A stretch of 64,000 nucleotides of DNA from sequence record LC494302.1. The stretch is one strand, 5' to 3'. Each line of letters starts with the position of its first letter. Within the stretch, counting starts at the first letter, position 1. The notes below the pieces were generated by a model that was not told where the DNA came from, made no database searches, and was given only the letters and a program-made list of their open reading frames with translations. Positions 3,346-60,409 of the stretch are shown here, in pieces. The translations under genes were made by a program, and so were the position numbers.

Positions 3346-3356
3346 TGAAAATAATG

Positions 3357-3384
3357 TGAACATATTAGATTCTTGTGATATAAT
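3357..3384 (+). promoter_or_regulatory. extended -10 promoter (GRACA class) within a 10 bp inverted repeat
   Basis: TGAACA-N16-TATAAT with TG extension; ATGTGAACAT (3354-3363) / ATGTTCACAT (3383-3392) followed by a T-tract. Confidence 0.7.
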
Positions 3385-3417
3385 GTTCACATCTTTTTTT
3401 TGATAACGGAGATATAG

Positions 3418-5059: not shown

Positions 5060-5085
5060 GACATACCATAAGTTTATGATATAAT
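5058..5085 (+). promoter_or_regulatory. extended -10 promoter (GRACA class) upstream of ncRNA copy 1
   Basis: GAGACA-N16-TATAAT, TGA immediately before the -10. Confidence 0.65.
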
Positions 5086-5087
5086 GT

Positions 5088-5122
5088 AAGGTGACAGCAG
5101 AATATGTTGTCGCCTTTTTTTT
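5088..5122 (+). terminator. intrinsic terminator overlapping the promoter start site
   Basis: AAGGTGACAGCA-gaata-TGTTGTCGCCTT plus T-tract. Confidence 0.75.
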
Positions 5123-5134
5123 AATCCTGAAAGG

Positions 5135-11149: not shown

Positions 11150-11167
11150 TTTAATTCATGATATAAT
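11140..11167 (+). promoter_or_regulatory. extended -10 promoter (GRACA class)
   Basis: GGGACA-N16-TATAAT with TGA before the -10. Confidence 0.7.
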
Positions 11168-11207
11168 AATGGGTAAGGAACAATAATTAACACAAGGAGT
11201 GTGTGAA

Positions 11208-18640: not shown

Positions 18641-18697
18641 GACGTATCAGAATTCGGTGATATAATTTGATTACATCACCAATAGGGAGAAGTTGAA

Positions 18698-26346: not shown

Positions 26347-26348
26347 TT

Positions 26349-26376
26349 TGGACATTTTAAATCTTAGTGATATAAT
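26349..26376 (+). promoter_or_regulatory. extended -10 promoter (GRACA class) of clpP
   Basis: TGGACA-N16-TATAAT, TGA before the -10. Confidence 0.72.
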
Positions 26377-26410
26377 ACTCACAACAACGAAATAATAGAG
26401 GAAATTAATA

Positions 26411-27933: not shown

Positions 27934-28013
27934 TTGCTGTATATCAATTTTCCATTGATCATATTTTGATCTATATGAGCTAAATACCCAAGGAATCATT
28001 GTTACTAGGGTAG

Positions 28014-28568
28014 GTGAATATGCAGCAATATAATTTAACTGAAGAACAAAGTGATATTTTTTACCATCATATGTTTTTAATTGATGAATTTGCTTTAAAA
28101 ATTAATTCTGAAGCAATTGATATATTGAAGAAATGGTATAGTTGTTATAATAAAAACAAAAAGTGGTATTGGTTTAATAGAAATATAAAATCATTTCTAA
28201 AAACAATCACATACACTGATAGTATTGAGTTAATACATAGTTCTATTGGATATAGTTACTTAACTAAACACAACAGTACTATGATGTTATCAGGGTTTAA
28301 AGTTGAAAGAATTTCCAAATTAACAGGTTTGTCATTAGAAACAATTCTATATGATATTGAGAAAATTTGGAAAACTATAGAATTAATGCATAAAAATATG
28401 TCATTCATATATAGAAATTATGATATATTCACTGATGTACGACAATATCATAATAAACCGTATGTATTGGATGAAAAGTACTATAATCATATGGAAGTTT
28501 GTTCTAAACTCGTTGATGATTGGAATCTAGAGGGACATAATGAAATACACACACCTAAGTATAGATGA
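28014..28568 (+). CDS. hypothetical protein (paralog of next ORF)
   Basis: YHNKPYVLDE versus YADKPFEINE. Confidence 0.72.
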   Translation: MNMQQYNLTEEQSDIFYHHMFLIDEFALKINSEAIDILKKWYSCYNKNKKWYWFNRNIKSFLKTITYTDSIELIHSSIGYSYLTKHNSTMMLSGFKVERISKLTGLSLETILYDIEKIWKTIELMHKNMSFIYRNYDIFTDVRQYHNKPYVLDEKYYNHMEVCSKLVDDWNLEGHNEIHTPKYR

Positions 28569-35577: not shown

Positions 35578-35585
35578 TATTGTAT

Positions 35586-35614
35586 GGGACATAATGTCCC
35601 ATACATGATATAAT
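35586..35614 (+). promoter_or_regulatory. extended -10 promoter (GRACA class) with a perfect 10 bp inverted repeat over the -35
   Basis: TGTATGGGAC-ataat-GTCCCATACA then TGATATAAT. Confidence 0.72.
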
Positions 35615-35645
35615 GTTGTTATCATAATACAGAAGGAGATATAAA

Positions 35646-40749: not shown

Positions 40750-41109
40750 ATGGCTAAAACAATTTCTTTAAAAAATGAAAATGTAGGACAACGCAAAGAT
40801 GGTTTCTTTGGTTTTTCTTGGACAACATTATTCTTTGGACCGTTCCCTGCATTGTTTCGTGGTGACTTTATTACGTTCATCGGTGCATTTGTAATTTACT
40901 TCATCCTCAACGCAGTGTCATTTTGGATTGTGGGTACAATTGCAATGGTTGTATGGGCATTTCTTTATAATAAGTACTACACAGTGAATCTCATCAAGAA
41001 TGGGTATAAATTCAATGGCACACATGAAGAAAATGCTGAAGCTGCAATGGCTTTGCAAATTGATTTGAATAAAAACAACACAGTTGATAAAAATAAAGAT
41101 CCTGAATAA
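40750..41109 (+). CDS. membrane protein (DUF2628-like)
   Basis: GFSWTTLFFGPFPALFRGD, hydrophobic core, YNK.Y...LIKNGY. Confidence 0.7.
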   Translation: MAKTISLKNENVGQRKDGFFGFSWTTLFFGPFPALFRGDFITFIGAFVIYFILNAVSFWIVGTIAMVVWAFLYNKYYTVNLIKNGYKFNGTHEENAEAAMALQIDLNKNNTVDKNKDPE

Positions 41110-41328
41110 ATGGAAAAATACGATATAATTTACGATTATTATGGTAAGGCTTATATGAAGTGTGGGCGTTATGTTGAACTCTCTAATAGAGAATCAATAG
41201 ATCCCCACACTCTTATAACAATTCATAATTCGTACTATAAAAAAGTTACAATAGCTAATTTTGCAACATACGTAAATAATCCTTTATTTCCTTACATTAT
41301 TCAGTACTACTGTAGAGTTATCAAATAA
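41110..41328 (+). CDS. hypothetical protein
   Basis: 72 aa, abuts upstream stop. Confidence 0.55.
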   Translation: MEKYDIIYDYYGKAYMKCGRYVELSNRESIDPHTLITIHNSYYKKVTIANFATYVNNPLFPYIIQYYCRVIK

Positions 41329-41339
41329 GGTAAAAAGAA

Positions 41340-41750
41340 ATGTTAGCTGATGAATTTATGTCACTAAGTATCAAGATATTTGATATACTAGGTGATGAAA
41401 CAGATTTCAATCTAAGCGACAAAGATATCCCATTGGAAGATGGTGGATACTTTTTTGCGATTGGAACTACGTATAATCTAGATCTTTCAAAGCCTATCAG
41501 TGATGATAGTGATTATAATGCAACAACATATTTTGATTTCCAGCTTGATGGACATAAAGAGCGTTTACTAACGTACAGACGTAAAGGTAGTTTCAATAGA
41601 ACCGAGATTACAATAATGGATTTTGAAAAACGCATTGAACTAGCTAAGAAACATCCATTCATCAGTACTCATACATTTAATAGACTAATCGATCTATTAG
41701 ATAATTATCCATATACAATCCGAGGGTCGTTACGTTTAAATGCAGAATGA
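41340..41750 (+). CDS. hypothetical protein
   Basis: 136 aa. Confidence 0.7.
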   Translation: MLADEFMSLSIKIFDILGDETDFNLSDKDIPLEDGGYFFAIGTTYNLDLSKPISDDSDYNATTYFDFQLDGHKERLLTYRRKGSFNRTEITIMDFEKRIELAKKHPFISTHTFNRLIDLLDNYPYTIRGSLRLNAE

Positions 41751-41925
41751 AATCTTCAAAAAAGAATACGATGGTGAAAGTCTCTATGATATTCAAAGAG
41801 ACGTACATGAAGCCTTCGATTCAAGATTTAACCCATTAGCTGAACAAATCCCACAAGATGAGTTTGGTTTTCAGGAAGGGACGTTCACAGTGACTATTAC
41901 ATGGAGTCCAGATGAGACTAGCTAA
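41740..41925 (+). CDS. small acidic hypothetical protein
   Basis: 61 aa; GESLYDIQRDVHEAFD. Confidence 0.7.
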   Translation: MQNEIFKKEYDGESLYDIQRDVHEAFDSRFNPLAEQIPQDEFGFQEGTFTVTITWSPDETS

Positions 41926-42026
41926 ACTTGTCATAGGTTGTAGTGCAATTGCTGCATATATGATTTTTTCAGCCCCAACCAATGTATTACTGTTAATTTG
42001 GGCAGTTGTCATATTAGCAGTACTTT

Positions 42027-42049
42027 AAAGCACCCTAGTGGTGCTTTTT
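42027..42049 (+). terminator. intrinsic terminator
   Basis: AAAGCACC-ctagt-GGTGCTTT plus T-tract. Confidence 0.78.
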
Positions 42050-42084
42050 CTATTTGTGCAAATAAAAACCAATGTGACTTTTCC

Positions 42085-42126
42085 TTGATATAGGTCAAGA
42101 GAAATAACCTGTTCTGACGCTATAAT
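42085..42126 (+). promoter_or_regulatory. class II FNR-type promoter of nrdD
   Basis: TTGAT-atag-GTCAA (42085-42098) centred at -41.5 relative to the start predicted from TATAAT at 42121-42126. Confidence 0.6.
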
Positions 42127-42187
42127 GTTGTCTGGTGATATTAAATATCTTCACCCCCAGATGATTTCAAAATACAAGGAATGTACA

Positions 42188-43993
42188 ATGCAATTAGATA
42201 AATTATATACTGACGTAACGAATTTCCTCAATCAGAGCAATACTGATCTTACCAACGAAAATGCGAACAAAGATGCGAAATGCGTCAATACACACAGGGA
42301 TTTACTTGCAGGTATCCTATCTAAGCATTATTCACAAGATGTTATTCCAAATGAGCTAATGCAGTGGCATAATGATGGTTATGGTCATATTCATGATTTA
42401 GACTACTATATCAGCCCATTAACCAACTGTTGCTTAGTTAACTACCCAGATATGCTAAAAAATGGATTTACCATTGGTTGTGCCAAAATTGAAGAACCAA
42501 AGAGTTTTAGTGTAGCATGTACAGTACTGACACAGATTGTACAAGCAGTAGCTAGTTCCCAATACGGCGGTCAATCGTTGGCTCACATTGATGTCGGTTT
42601 AGAACCTTACGTTCAAAAGTCATGGGATAAGCTGTTAGAAAAACAAAAGAAATATAATCTAAGTGATGAGTTCATTGAAGAAGAATTACGAAAAGAAGTA
42701 TACGATGGATGTCAAACATTACTTTACCAGACTAATTCAATGATTAGCACTAATGGACAAGCTGCATTCATTTCTCTTAGTTTAGGGCTTAATACTTCTA
42801 AATTTGGTAAATTAATCACTGAACAGTACTTAAAAGTTCATGAGAATGGTTTAGGTAAAGATAAGATTACTCCAGTGTTTCCTAAAGTAATTTTCTTTTT
42901 ACAAGATGGTATAAACATGAATACCAATGATAGTAATTATGACCTTAAACAGTTAGCTATGCGTTGTGCATCAAAACGAATCTACCCAGACTTTGTTTCA
43001 GTTCCATTAAATCACAAAGTGACGGGAAGTAGTAGTACTGCTGTAACACCGATGGGCTGTCGTTCATTCTTAGGAAAATGGGAAGATTCAAATGGAAATG
43101 AACAATATAACGGTCGTTTCAATTTAGGCGTAGTTTCTATCAATTTACCTCTAATTGCTCTTGAGAGTGCTTCTGATGGAGAGTTTTTTGATAAGATAGA
43201 CGAGCACATGAATATTGCATATCGTGCTCAGATGAACCGTGTGGAGCGTTTAAAAGGCACTAAAGCGAAGCAGAATCCAATTTTGTTCATGGAAGGTGCA
43301 TTAGCACGTTTAGGTGCAGAAGAAACCATTGACAAGCTATTTTACAATGGTTATGCTAGTATTAGTATTGGTTATGTTGGTCTTGTTGAATGTTCAGAAA
43401 TCCTCACTGGTTCTATCAGTAAGGAGTTTTGTATGTCAGTACTGAATTATATGAAAGTAAAATGTGATGAGTTCAAAAAAGAAAGTAATATTGCTTTTAG
43501 TCTATATGGAACTCCAGCAGAGTCGCTTTGTTATAAATTTGCACGTTGCATTGAAGCAAAATATCCTTCAGTACTAAAACGTGATTACATCACAAATTCC
43601 TTCCATCAACCAGTATGGGTAGAAAGTTCTCCATTTGATAAATGGAGTTATGAAGAAGGGTTTGCTTACCTAAGTAACGGTGGAAACATCAGTTATGTTG
43701 AATCTCCAAACTTAGCAAACAACATTCAAGCACTTGAAACATTAGTTAACTATGCGTACACTAAGATACCATATTTTGGTATTAACCAACCAGTTGACCA
43801 TTGTTATGAATGTGGCTTCCAGGGTGAGTTCAGTGTCGATAAACATGGTTTCCACTGTCCTGTATGTGATAATCGTAATGAGAAGACAATCTCAGTGATT
43901 CGTCGTGTTTCTGGGTACTTGGGTAATCCTTCTTCGCGTGGCTTCAATAAAGGCAAGCAACAAGAGTGTTGCGAGCGTATTCAGCACAAATAA
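42188..43993 (+). CDS. nrdD: anaerobic (class III) ribonucleoside-triphosphate reductase
   Basis: HIHDLDY, NCC, QYGG, VFPK, PMGCRSFL, FNLGVVSINL, YGTPAES, TNSFH, CxxC...CxxC, RRVSGYL; start reassigned to ATG 42188 behind AAGGA. Confidence 0.96.
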   Translation: MQLDKLYTDVTNFLNQSNTDLTNENANKDAKCVNTHRDLLAGILSKHYSQDVIPNELMQWHNDGYGHIHDLDYYISPLTNCCLVNYPDMLKNGFTIGCAKIEEPKSFSVACTVLTQIVQAVASSQYGGQSLAHIDVGLEPYVQKSWDKLLEKQKKYNLSDEFIEEELRKEVYDGCQTLLYQTNSMISTNGQAAFISLSLGLNTSKFGKLITEQYLKVHENGLGKDKITPVFPKVIFFLQDGINMNTNDSNYDLKQLAMRCASKRIYPDFVSVPLNHKVTGSSSTAVTPMGCRSFLGKWEDSNGNEQYNGRFNLGVVSINLPLIALESASDGEFFDKIDEHMNIAYRAQMNRVERLKGTKAKQNPILFMEGALARLGAEETIDKLFYNGYASISIGYVGLVECSEILTGSISKEFCMSVLNYMKVKCDEFKKESNIAFSLYGTPAESLCYKFARCIEAKYPSVLKRDYITNSFHQPVWVESSPFDKWSYEEGFAYLSNGGNISYVESPNLANNIQALETLVNYAYTKIPYFGINQPVDHCYECGFQGEFSVDKHGFHCPVCDNRNEKTISVIRRVSGYLGNPSSRGFNKGKQQECCERIQHK

Positions 43994-44001
43994 GGTAAAT
44001 T

Positions 44002-44334
44002 ATGGATTTAAAGCCAATTGTGGTTAACAAATACAAAGAACCGTATGATGTGTATATTGGACGTGGGTCTAAATGGGGAAACCCATTTACCCATATTAAA
44101 GATAAACAAACCAAAGCCGAGTTCATTGTTAGTACAAGAGAAGAATCAATTGAAAAATTCAGAGAATACATTATTGAACGTATTTCTTGTGGAGAAGTTA
44201 AGATTGATGAATTACTTGAACTCGCAGGGAAACGCCTTGGTTGTTTCTGTAAACCAAAATCATGTCACGGCGATGTTCTTGTCGAAATAGTGAGTGCAAT
44301 ATTAGATGAATTACCAGACGATAATCAAGGATGA
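44002..44334 (+). CDS. DUF4326 protein
   Basis: DVYIGRGSKWGNPF ... LAGKRLGCFCKP..CHGDVL. Confidence 0.88.
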   Translation: MDLKPIVVNKYKEPYDVYIGRGSKWGNPFTHIKDKQTKAEFIVSTREESIEKFREYIIERISCGEVKIDELLELAGKRLGCFCKPKSCHGDVLVEIVSAILDELPDDNQG

Positions 44335-44776
44335 TTTAGTAAATGGAGAGGGCGTTCGCTGCTCTTTATTTGTTAGTGGGTGTTCGCACGGATGTGATGG
44401 TTGCTTCAATGAAGAAGCATGGGATTACAGAAGTGGTCAATTGTTCAGTACTGAAACAGTTGAGATTATACTACAGGAACTAAAAAAACCATATGTTAGT
44501 GGTTTGTCACTTCTAGGCGGCGATCCATTAATGAAAAAGAATATAGATGAAGTTTTAAATCTATGCAAAGTAGTTAAAGAAACTTATCCTAGTAAAACTA
44601 TTTGGTGCTGGAGTGGGTATACTTTAGATGAGATTATGAAAAATCATGCTAAAGATATACTTCAGTACTTAGATGTATTAGTTGATGGTAAGTTTATTGA
44701 GTCCGAAAAGAATTTAAAATTACCTTTCCGTGGTTCAAATAATCAAAGAATACTATATAAAAATAAAGATTTTTAG
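44306..44776 (+). CDS. nrdG: anaerobic RNR activating enzyme (radical SAM)
   Basis: NGEGVRCSLFVSGCSHGCDGCFN, LGGDPL, DGKF, FRGSNNQR. Confidence 0.95.
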   Translation: MNYQTIIKDDLVNGEGVRCSLFVSGCSHGCDGCFNEEAWDYRSGQLFSTETVEIILQELKKPYVSGLSLLGGDPLMKKNIDEVLNLCKVVKETYPSKTIWCWSGYTLDEIMKNHAKDILQYLDVLVDGKFIESEKNLKLPFRGSNNQRILYKNKDF

Positions 44777-44779
44777 CAT

Positions 44780-44802
44780 AAGCACCCGTTGGGTGCTTTT
44801 TT
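44780..44802 (+). terminator. intrinsic terminator
   Basis: AAGCACCC-gtt-GGGTGCTT plus T-tract. Confidence 0.8.
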
Positions 44803-44810
44803 ATTATGTA

Positions 44811-44818
44811 TATAAATA
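44811..44818 (+). promoter_or_regulatory. T4-type late promoter
   Basis: exact TATAAATA between a terminator and a large structural-type gene. Confidence 0.7.
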
Positions 44819-44852
44819 CATTAACTAATATCTAATTTATAAGGGATATATA

Positions 44853-47549
44853 ATGTCAAAGAAAATATATGGTGGCTTAGATGTCACACATAATGTGACA
44901 GTTAATGGTAAAAGAACAATTCAAGGAATAAATGAACAAGTTTTTGATTCCAACGGTAACTTGGAATTAGATACTTATTCCAGAGATGAAGTACTAGATA
45001 TAGTAAGTATGATGCCAATCTCCCATTATGGTTCACAAAACTATCTACCTGCGGGTGTTTCTGGGGATTTCAATGGTGCATCAGAAAACCAGTCACAACG
45101 TAGAAATAAAATTTTATTAGAAAACGATGGTACACTAGTACTTTTACGTAGTGGGACAAACGGTAGTGTTGAGGGATTATTTTATTCATATTTGGCTAAC
45201 GCATTATCAGTTGATGACATGAGCCGTACAATTAACACTAGTCGTCAATACAAGCCTGGGTTTTTTGGTTCAAATAGAGTTGCGATTGGTTTATACAATA
45301 CTGATCCAAATATTTTACTCGGTAGATATATTGATACTTCTAACAGTACTAATGGTTTGTTCATATCAATTACCAATGGTACATTAGATGATAAATTGCA
45401 TACTGGTTTTTTCGTTAACCAAGCAGATATATCACCTGAAGGTGGTATTGAATATGCTATGATGGCAGAAGATGGTTCTATATATGTTTTTAACGTACTT
45501 AATGAAAATAACCAACTACAATTAGTTGTTGTTAAAGTTGTTTATAATATAAGCAATGGTACTTATACTGCAACTCGAATTACTGGATGGACTACTAAAA
45601 CATTTTATAACACGACATATTCTGCACAAAATAATATGGTTATTACTAATCAGGTAACATCAACAAATATTGCTGATAAACCTTATGCTTATGTCCCACA
45701 AAATCTACGCGGTATTGGGATTTACATGACATCAATTGATTTATATGTTGCACAGCAGCCAGGAACGCAGAATTTCCGCTTTAGAATGAACGGGGACGCT
45801 TGGTTTACAATGGCAACATATAATACACGTCCACAGCATAGTTACAGTTTTGTGTTCAATATGAGTACTAAACAATGTACATTAGATGCGGGTAATGATA
45901 TTGGTTCATACCAAGCACCATTAGTTATAACGGATACAGGTTCAGCATTAGTTCCTACTGGTAACGTTTTAAATAACGATCCATTGTATAACCATGCAAA
46001 TGCAAGGAACATTTACAGTTCTTATTTTTATTTAAATTCAGGTGAAGCATTTTGTACTGCATGTCCAAACTTAGCAGAACCATTACTTATGCAAAAAGCT
46101 AAGTTTCCTATTCAAATAGTTTATAGTATGCTGAATGTCCGTGCTGTACTTTCTACTGACTTCAAAGGTGGCATAGTTCGCCCGTCTTTTGGTTCAGCGG
46201 TTGGTTCATTTATTAATGGTGTAGAATTACTACCAGATAACAGTACTAAACAATATTCACGTGCATCAGGTAGTGGTGGATTTAGACCATCATATGCAGT
46301 TCATAAAAGTACTCCTAATTTTACATTTAAATCATTATCTTTAGGAACAATACAAGGTTATGAACCTACAGTTGAACGTGCTAATGTTGATGATAATGCA
46401 AATAATAGAATTTTTATTAGTAGTATTTCTGGGTCAACTGTCACAACCAATGGTGGTATTTTTATGGTTGGGCAACGTTATTCACAATCATTATCCTATG
46501 ATAAAAACTTAAATGGCACAGGAATTATAAGCGTTACACAATCAGTACTGGACAATTTTAGAAATACTGAATATGCCAAAGTTCTAAGTGATTGGAATTT
46601 ATCAGCACAAGCATACCGTGATATGACACTATTTGTTCCACAACAAACAGACATTCCAGCTTTTGTTATGTTGAGTACAATTACTAATGATTATAGAAAC
46701 TATATTAGAATTGCTGAAGTTAATGTCAATACTAGAGTTGGTAATATTACATCTATTACATTTAAGCGTTTAGTACTTGAGAATACGTATGGTGATAACT
46801 TTACACCAACTGGGAATGGTTCGATTGCATCTTCTTCTGTTGGTTTGACAATATATGATGGTGGTTCATTCTACTTCATTGGTGGTTCTGACCCATTATC
46901 ACATCCAACAATAGGTAATACTGCAACTCATCAATTTAGAGCATATGTAACTAAATCAACTGCACAATTTACAAGTTTTATAATTACTGGATCTCATGCC
47001 AGTTATGAACAAGGAAGTCAACCAGCAGCATTACCTGGTATTGGTTTTGGAATTTTTGAACCAATGGATTACTCAAATAAAATGACATTCAAAAAATATG
47101 GAACAACGATTGCAGACTATAATAACTGGACTGCACAAGGTAGCCCAATTAACGTAGTATCCCAGGACGTTGCTCAAGGGTTTATTGTATATTTTACAGA
47201 GGAAACACCAGTTATTCTTTCAGGTAAGTCATTTTCACTACCAGTTTCAAATATTGATTTGAGAACTATTAAGTCTAATCCAGCAAATACAACATTTTAT
47301 GTATATGTTAAATTGGAACAAGGATTGGCAAACTATTACATAACTACTGATGTTATTTCTGAAACAGGAACAACTGCATATAATATTTTTTGGATAGGTA
47401 CAATTCAAACTAATGCAATTCAAATCGAAACAATTAATATACAAAAACGTTCCCGTTTAGATATATTTGGTGCTTCACTTGAATCAGCAGGTTCATCGTT
47501 CCCAGTTAGCTACGGTCTACCATCACAAACAGGAACCATAAACTGGTAA
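44853..47549 (+). CDS. large putative virion structural (fibre/baseplate-type) protein A
   Basis: 898 aa, G/S/T/N-rich, late-type promoter; paralog of 48165-50894. Confidence 0.75.
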   Translation: MSKKIYGGLDVTHNVTVNGKRTIQGINEQVFDSNGNLELDTYSRDEVLDIVSMMPISHYGSQNYLPAGVSGDFNGASENQSQRRNKILLENDGTLVLLRSGTNGSVEGLFYSYLANALSVDDMSRTINTSRQYKPGFFGSNRVAIGLYNTDPNILLGRYIDTSNSTNGLFISITNGTLDDKLHTGFFVNQADISPEGGIEYAMMAEDGSIYVFNVLNENNQLQLVVVKVVYNISNGTYTATRITGWTTKTFYNTTYSAQNNMVITNQVTSTNIADKPYAYVPQNLRGIGIYMTSIDLYVAQQPGTQNFRFRMNGDAWFTMATYNTRPQHSYSFVFNMSTKQCTLDAGNDIGSYQAPLVITDTGSALVPTGNVLNNDPLYNHANARNIYSSYFYLNSGEAFCTACPNLAEPLLMQKAKFPIQIVYSMLNVRAVLSTDFKGGIVRPSFGSAVGSFINGVELLPDNSTKQYSRASGSGGFRPSYAVHKSTPNFTFKSLSLGTIQGYEPTVERANVDDNANNRIFISSISGSTVTTNGGIFMVGQRYSQSLSYDKNLNGTGIISVTQSVLDNFRNTEYAKVLSDWNLSAQAYRDMTLFVPQQTDIPAFVMLSTITNDYRNYIRIAEVNVNTRVGNITSITFKRLVLENTYGDNFTPTGNGSIASSSVGLTIYDGGSFYFIGGSDPLSHPTIGNTATHQFRAYVTKSTAQFTSFIITGSHASYEQGSQPAALPGIGFGIFEPMDYSNKMTFKKYGTTIADYNNWTAQGSPINVVSQDVAQGFIVYFTEETPVILSGKSFSLPVSNIDLRTIKSNPANTTFYVYVKLEQGLANYYITTDVISETGTTAYNIFWIGTIQTNAIQIETINIQKRSRLDIFGASLESAGSSFPVSYGLPSQTGTINW

Positions 47550-60340: not shown

Positions 60341-60341
60341 T

Positions 60342-60369
60342 GGGACATTATATGTTCCAATGATATAAT
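60342..60369 (+). promoter_or_regulatory. extended -10 promoter (GRACA class) upstream of ncRNA copy 2
   Basis: GGGACA-N16-TATAAT; imperfect inverted repeat TGGGACAT/ATGTTCCA. Confidence 0.72.
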
Positions 60370-60409
60370 GTATATAGAAAATGACAACGGACATTGAAAA
60401 ATGGACACT

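Follow-up and report, generated by a model that had tools for sequence, protein, structure and literature searches.

A conserved FNR-type box upstream of the anaerobic ribonucleotide reductase operon of Rak2-like jumbo phages, a candidate operator for the oxygen sensor of the host

Can a lytic phage respond to the absence of oxygen through a regulator that belongs to its host? The question is raised by a 64,000-nt stretch of sequence record LC494302.1 (the whole of this stretch is called the window here), in which an FNR-type box lies between an upstream terminator and the operon nrdD-DUF4326-nrdG, encoding an anaerobic ribonucleotide reductase and its activase. Escherichia phage SP27 (LC494302, 347 kb, Asteriusvirus PBECO4) was 100% identical over the 2.9-kb region compared, and 21 other records of the genus matched the same region at 96–99.6% identity; SP27 is a member of the Rak2-like jumbo phages. 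A first-pass annotation of this DNA had proposed that the operon is wired to host FNR. Control of the operon by host FNR is likewise the best reading in our analysis, with a probability of roughly two in three (0.68), and the phage operon would probably be switched on only without oxygen. We infer FNR as the binding protein, the transcription start positions and the responsive promoter from sequence; the elements concerned are listed below with their coordinates in the window.

42085..42098, no strand assigned: FNR-type palindrome TTGATATAGGTCAA, reading TTGAT-ATAG-GTCAA, a 9/10 match to TTGAT-N4-ATCAA and the proposed operator for host FNR
42099..42104, + strand: −35 position of the sigma-70-type promoter P1, reading GAGAAA, degenerate, 4/6 matches to the phage's own GGGACA, which lineages L016, L019 and L044 have here
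42121..42126, + strand: −10 hexamer TATAAT of P1; a predicted start at ~42133 (7 nt downstream) would put the box at −41.5, the class II geometry
42142..42147, + strand: TAAATA, a T4-type late promoter core (P2), separated from the box by exactly 43 nt in all lineages
42150..42155, + strand: conserved TTCACC; A42153, 6 nt after TAAATA, is the predicted P2 start and would put the box at −61.5
44811..44818, + strand: late promoter of T4 type with the perfect sequence TATAAATA, preceding the next gene (which encodes an 898-aa protein); it shows that the phage uses this class

The box in SP27 consists of TTGAT (42085–42089), ATAG (42090–42093) and GTCAA (42094–42098) and is centred at 42091.5, with the TATAAT 22 nt downstream. 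The first-pass annotation had given these box coordinates, the 9/10 match, the position of the TATAAT and the arithmetic that leads to −41.5, all of which are correct on the sequence, and the terminator that it had placed upstream of the box is real (ΔG −10 kcal/mol, z −3.3). The window contained 17 sites with at most one mismatch (9.9 ± 3.0 expected), and the 347-kb genome 60, compared with 35 for a reversed-pattern control. A density of about one such site per 5.8 kb in an AT-rich genome would be in line with a match that is a functionless chance occurrence. The match in this single genome is not significant alone, and its significance therefore rests on conservation among relatives.

To this end, nrdD upstream regions were gathered from GenBank relatives and IMG/VR contigs. 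The resulting set of 20 genomes comprised Asteriusvirus, Alcyoneusvirus (RaK2, RCIP0023, KP13-7), Eneladusvirus (fHe-Yen9-04, pEa_SNUABM_47), GAP32/CBB-type contigs and metagenome lineages; the recorded hosts of the named isolates are Escherichia, Salmonella, Klebsiella and Erwinia, with one Yersinia phage, all Enterobacterales. Every one of these 20 Rak2-like genomes had the pattern TTGAT-N4-[AG]TCAA, located 90–104 nt 5′ of the nrdD ATG, and a 371-kb contig (L070), recovered by a pattern search independent of NrdD similarity, added a further box. The check that the first-pass annotation had proposed, conservation of the box upstream of nrdD in relatives, thus came out positive in 21/21 genomes. 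The match to TTGAT-N4-ATCAA rises from 9/10 in SP27 to 10/10 in many relatives, with TTGATTTAAATCAA in RaK2, TTGATCTAGATCAA in Eneladus/GAP32 types, TTGATATAGATCAA in CMSTMSU and perfect boxes in CBB-type contigs as well.

An ungapped alignment anchored on the box was then used as a footprint across 16 non-redundant sequences. The ten positions that specify FNR binding held 1.9 bits each and were invariant or A/G, while information outside the box was 0.56–0.91 bits (0.88 in the 40 nt upstream and 0.56–0.87 in the spacers), and the central N4 of the box itself varied. The flanks have diverged almost beyond alignment; those of Eneladusvirus could not be aligned with SP27, and the box there is a perfect 10/10. 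Perfect boxes are also rare in these ~350-kb genomes: SP27 has one, RaK2 and fHe-Yen9-04 have two each and pEa_SNUABM_47 has three. One of these precedes nrdD in RaK2, fHe-Yen9-04 and pEa_SNUABM_47, and the remaining perfect copies that were inspected (SP27 and RaK2) are intragenic. Among 37 nrdD loci of T4-like phages, whose proteins are 35–48% identical, no site with one mismatch or fewer was found within ~120 nt of the start. Because the box is conserved where its flanks have diverged, perfect copies are rare and T4-like nrdD genes do without it, we regard the box as a clade-specific signal under purifying selection. A chance origin is effectively refuted by its presence in 21/21 genomes with randomised flanks and only one to three perfect sites per genome.

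Which protein would read such a box? Both half-sites always keep TTGA/TCAA with a leading T, and this T distinguishes an FNR site from a CRP site, which has GTGA. The first-pass annotation had named cross-recognition within the CRP family as an alternative, in which host CRP would bind the box and the operon would follow carbon status. Sites for the two proteins are related, and the central TGATCTAGATCA of the Eneladusvirus box also occurs in an ideal CRP site. However, the discriminating position of each half-site is T and never G in the 16 non-redundant sequences, the boxes have 3–4 mismatches in ten positions to TGTGA-N6-TCACA, and there is no physiological reason linking an oxygen-sensitive enzyme to cyclic AMP. 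Binding by CRP is very improbable on these grounds, and this alternative was not borne out.

A search for CRP/FNR-family helix-turn-helix proteins, in which the positive controls performed as they should, returned none in five complete genomes of the clade; such a reader would therefore have to be the host's. Furthermore, FNR binds and activates E. coli nrdDG (PMC2892513, PMC3688515), in accord with what the first-pass annotation had stated. Its proposal that the operon is wired to host FNR has thus gained support from the footprint, from the T in both half-sites, from the lack of a phage CRP/FNR protein in those genomes and from the FNR-bound host nrdD promoter, and it stands here as a probable reading. 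We also considered that some other protein, be it a non-FNR host factor or a phage regulator whose fold goes unrecognised, reads the palindrome and tunes the timing of nrdD regardless of oxygen, the likeness to FNR sites being convergent or coincidental. More than 80% of the genes in these phages are without known function (PMC7247149), and an unrecognised DNA-binding protein is possible among them. Such a protein would have to be a dedicated regulator for a single operator, as the site is unique in each genome, and it would have to select exactly the positions that FNR reads while the central N4 varies. The genes under its control would also be exactly those with FNR-controlled counterparts in the host, and a helix-turn-helix of the CRP/FNR type was found in none of the five genomes. 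We consider this explanation distinctly unlikely, even with the two promoter observations in its favour that are given below.

If FNR is the reader, at which promoter would it act? In the majority of promoters activated by FNR the site lies at −41.5 ± 4, and in a few it lies at around −61 (PMC3688515). With a start at 42133, predicted from the TATAAT, the SP27 box is centred at −41.5. The absence of a recognisable −35, reported by the first-pass annotation, was confirmed: a promoter scan listed no sigma-70 promoter at P1 because the −35 position reads GAGAAA/AGAGAA. In the window the common promoter class of the phage, (G)GGACA-N17-TGATATAAT, combines an unusual −35 with an extended −10, and the lack of both GGGACA and TG at P1 of SP27 would suit a promoter that depends on an activator. 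The −35 expected of a class II FNR promoter, weak or absent, is thus seen in SP27 and not in lineages L016, L019 and L044, where both GGGACA and TGATATAAT follow straight after the box; RaK2 has TGATATAAT at P1. The TATAAT is invariant in Asteriusvirus, Alcyoneusvirus and the three lineages just named. The −10 reads TATTAT in L059, pEa47 and L018 and TATTTT in L017, in each case directly after a covarying CCCC-N7-GGGG hairpin, and no credible match was found at this position in fHe-Yen9-04 (TTGAAT) and L020 (TTTTTT). The class II geometry claimed by the first-pass annotation would fit SP27 with a start at 42133 and is one of two readings; across lineages the TATAAT can be missing or degenerate, and the spacing that is fixed is the one from the box to TAAATA.

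The hairpin mentioned above has the form (A/T)ACCCC-N7-GGGGT(A/T), with one covarying pair and a T-rich run behind it, and lies between the box and the −10 in L017, L018, L052, L059, L011, L020 and L070. It occurs in Eneladus, GAP32 and CBB-type lineages, its score as an NrdR box is that of background, and it probably terminates the upstream gene while lying within the spacer of the nrdD promoter. In SP27, promoters of the GGGACA class often lie inside or adjoin terminator hairpins as well, such that one short gap ends and restarts transcription (3346–3417, 5060–5125, 11150–11207, 18641–18697, 26347–26410, 35578–35645 and 60341–60370).

In T4, late transcription starts 6 nt after the promoter core, and this geometry is the basis for placing the P2 start at A42153. 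The spacing from the box to TAAATA was 43 nt in 16/16 sequences, although the distances within it differ, with 22 or 23 nt from the box to the TATAAT and 15 or 14 nt from there to TAAATA. Compensating distances whose sum is always 43 nt point to a constraint between the box and TAAATA, and this spacing is better conserved than that from the box to the TATAAT. With both strands counted, the window contains 28 copies of TAAATA where 134 ± 12 would be expected, a five-fold depletion. Of the 20 copies on the plus strand, six are intergenic (27981, 42142, 44813, 54238, 58206 and 61457) and stand 28–41 nt before start codons, some of them before tail-gene operons; the two bases preceding these copies are variable. 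At nrdD the TAAATA core is invariant and precedes a gene, and the full T4 octamer is matched at only 6/8 positions. Because the hexamer is depleted and sited before starts, and because an ATAAATA late motif and a gp55-like sigma gene have been reported for Rak2-like phages (PMC5259590), the copy at 42142 is read as a late-type promoter core.

The composite of the box, 40–46 nt and TAAATA occurred once per genome, always at nrdD, in the genomes searched. With the predicted start at A42153, the box would sit at about −61.5 of P2, which fits the canonical class I position; the main host nrdDG site reportedly lies at about −64.5, close to this placement. From a class I position an activator contacts only the alpha subunit of RNA polymerase (PMC3688515). 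An IMG/VR-wide scan for the box followed by N43 and TAAATA returned at least 115 matches, mostly chance, and among the matches listed only the one in L070 is followed by nrdD. A wider FNR regulon in the phage was not apparent, since the perfect boxes inspected were intragenic and a relaxed search for class II-like composites gave a few scattered extra matches. One FNR-like sequence, TTGCTGTATATCAA (27934–27947, one mismatch, in the core), is found upstream of a gene at 28020 and 33 nt before the intergenic TAAATA at 27981–27986, a spacing shorter than that at nrdD by one helical turn; chance is the probable cause.

The fixed distance can be explained in more than one way. A 43-nt spacing to a late-type promoter would suit a phage-specific activator of the late polymerase, and the three lineages with a self-sufficient-looking P1 would agree with a reader other than FNR; these are the two observations referred to above. 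Within FNR control, it is possible, if doubtful, that FNR binds and only the sigma-70-type P1 responds, with TAAATA an independent, oxygen-blind late promoter whose distance from the box is fixed for some other cause. Such a restriction to P1 would agree with −41.5 being the commonest activating position of FNR (19/23 promoters; PMC3688515), with the TATAAT that is invariant across Asteriusvirus and Alcyoneusvirus and with the missing −35 of P1 in SP27. It sits less well with the compensated distances that keep the box and TAAATA 43 nt apart, and with the two lineages that lack the P1 −10 and still have a perfect box. Conversely, host FNR might activate the late promoter of the gp55-like sigma from −61.5 through alpha, which would couple an oxygen sensor to a viral alternative holoenzyme. 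We put this forward tentatively and regard it as rather unlikely; if it is true, the conserved 43-nt distance from box to TAAATA would be the signature of such a hybrid of FNR and late promoter.

Returning to host FNR control as a whole, we propose the following course of events. Under anoxia, FNR dimers with [4Fe-4S] clusters that the infected cell already contains would bind the box and recruit RNA polymerase to nrdD-DUF4326-nrdG. When oxygen is present, FNR would be an inactive monomer, the box would be empty and the oxygen-sensitive glycyl-radical enzyme would not be made; the phage class I reductase, as reported for Rak2-like phages (PMC5259590), would then supply deoxynucleoside triphosphates (dNTPs). 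FNR could act at P1 (class II, −41.5), at P2 (class I, about −61.5) or at both. Action at both is conceivable because the −10 elements are 21 bp apart and on the same helix face, and the two predicted start points are both in helical phase with the box.

Several points weigh against control by host FNR. The SP27 box is only a 9/10 match and such sites are common by chance, and T4-like phages manage nrdD without a box. In L016, L019 and L044, P1 has a full phage-type −35 together with the extended −10 and may fire without an activator, and in fHe-Yen9-04 and L020, with their perfect boxes, there is no credible −10 at P1. We know of no precedent for FNR acting on a late-type holoenzyme. Moreover, T4 ADP-ribosylates the alpha subunit of RNA polymerase, and large lytic phages often modify the polymerase of the host; such modification could block the contacts of an activator.

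Public expression data and the literature were also surveyed. In four wastewater metatranscriptome runs of one study (X2, X4, X5 and X6), the region 41000–46500 was represented by scattered 100–320-nt contigs on nrdD, nrdG and their neighbours, none of which extended across 42068–42273. These contigs were 90–100% identical to the phage region, and close relatives are thus present in sewage RNA or DNA preparations. In full-text searches of the literature, no account of FNR sites in the nrdD promoters of phages came up, and the papers describing phAPEC6, Sharanji and CBB are silent on them. Phage Sharanji grows on E. coli MG1655.

If host FNR control is true, giant lytic phages of gut and plant enterobacteria would, across an entire clade, sense oxygen by way of the host's sensor and choose accordingly between oxygen-dependent and oxygen-sensitive pathways to dNTPs. 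It would also provide a clear case outside the cyanophages of a metabolic gene of a lytic phage under a host environmental regulator. The matter bears on phage replication in the anoxic gut as against aerated laboratory cultures, and several such phages have been proposed for therapy. Furthermore, the link between the box and a late promoter raises the question of whether bacterial class I activators can work on an RNA polymerase remodelled by a phage.

The operon, with the terminators on either side of the unit, has the following anatomy.

42027..42052, + strand: intrinsic terminator, 8-bp GC-rich stem (42027–47) followed by a T run (ΔG −10 kcal/mol, z −3.3)
42176..42181, + strand: Shine-Dalgarno sequence AAGGAA of nrdD, from the sequence
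42188..43993, + strand: nrdD, anaerobic class III glycyl-radical ribonucleotide reductase, 601 aa (Pfam NRDD 1.3e-166, Gly_radical 1.2e-22; SP27 annotation)
44002..44334, + strand: DUF4326 protein, 110 aa (Pfam DUF4326 6e-24)
44306..44776, + strand: nrdG, radical-SAM activase of NrdD, 156 aa (Pfam Fer4_12 2.9e-53, Radical_SAM 6e-9)
44780..44806, + strand: intrinsic terminator ending the operon (−11.9 kcal/mol, z −3.2)

By Pfam, an NrdD with a glycyl-radical domain is accompanied by a radical-SAM activase NrdG, as in a class III ribonucleotide reductase operon. The first terminator ends the block of genes upstream and sets the nrdD unit apart, and the same site is annotated as a terminator in the record of phage G17. 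Just 5′ of it lies a palindrome AGTACT (42018–42023), conserved in Asteriusvirus relatives, and a 38-codon hydrophobic open reading frame (41912–42029) without a Pfam match ends within the terminator stem; this frame is annotated in phages G17 (G17_00428) and ph0011 and unannotated in SP27. The start of nrdD is most likely the ATG at 42188, behind the Shine-Dalgarno sequence and as annotated in SP27. An in-frame ATG at 42125, which would give a longer reading frame, was ruled out as the start because indels of relatives between the two ATGs are not multiples of three. The DUF4326 gene between nrdD and nrdG overlaps the start of nrdG by 29 nt and is conserved in Asteriusvirus; its position alone suggests a role in the anaerobic reductase system.

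In other lineages the gene directly 3′ of nrdD is a different one. Yersinia phage fHe-Yen9-04 (g132; L052 3417–3776) encodes a 120-aa protein here that consists of hardly more than a Gly_radical domain (Pfam 1e-17), and a small glycyl-radical protein next to nrdD is annotated in UE-S1 and ph0011 as well. The 120-aa protein resembles the spare-part protein GrcA/YfiD of the host and, judging by this likeness, could repair NrdD that has been cleaved by oxygen; in Eneladusvirus its gene probably shares an operon with nrdD. Host yfiD is FNR-activated (PMC3688515), and a GrcA/YfiD-like gene after nrdD would by analogy fit FNR-type biology.

Other candidate features of the leader were considered and set aside. 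A structured 5′ leader was rejected: RNAalifold gave no consensus pairs for the leader RNA, and folding of the SP27 leader was no better than that of shuffled sequences (z +0.5). The GGTGA...TCACC inverted repeat is not conserved. Tandem 16-bp NrdR boxes were represented at best by matches with 5–8 mismatches, the background of 150-nt windows, against 3 for the E. coli box, in what is a weak test with an idealised consensus. Capture of a host promoter was likewise rejected, since on inspection the upstream region of E. coli nrdD has no architecture or sequence in common with that of the phage.

How does the phage arrangement compare with known systems? As in T4-type late promoters (TATAAATA, gp55-like sigma), the nrdD promoter region has a TAAATA core ~40 nt before the start codon, the motif is avoided elsewhere and promoters of the same class stand before structural genes; it differs in the two bases preceding the nrdD TAAATA, which are not TA. 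A composite-motif search found no FNR-type box upstream of other late-type promoters in the genomes searched, and the fixed coupling of such a box to a late-type promoter is possibly a new variant. The nrdDG promoter of the host (E. coli and Salmonella, under FNR and NrdR) serves the same enzyme pair and also has an FNR-type site upstream (PMC2892513), but it carries two FNR-like sites and NrdR boxes, against a single box and no significant NrdR box in the phage, and the phage NrdD is of the short T4-like type (601 aa). Class II FNR promoters of E. coli (narG, nirB, dmsA, yfiD) resemble P1 in having a site of the TTGAT-N4-ATCAA type, 41.5 bp before a start predicted from the TATAAT in the phage case, a poor −35 and a product useful only without oxygen (PMC3688515). 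The phage case differs in belonging to a lytic jumbo phage, in having its start predicted from sequence and in having a second, better-conserved spacing to a T4-late-type core. Finally, the PhoB boxes before pstS/phoA of cyanophages involve another regulator, another signal (phosphate, as against oxygen here) and another group of hosts, and the evidence in Rak2-like phages is comparative only; in both cases a metabolic gene of a lytic phage would be placed under an environmental sensor of the host and expressed only when useful (PMC10976474).

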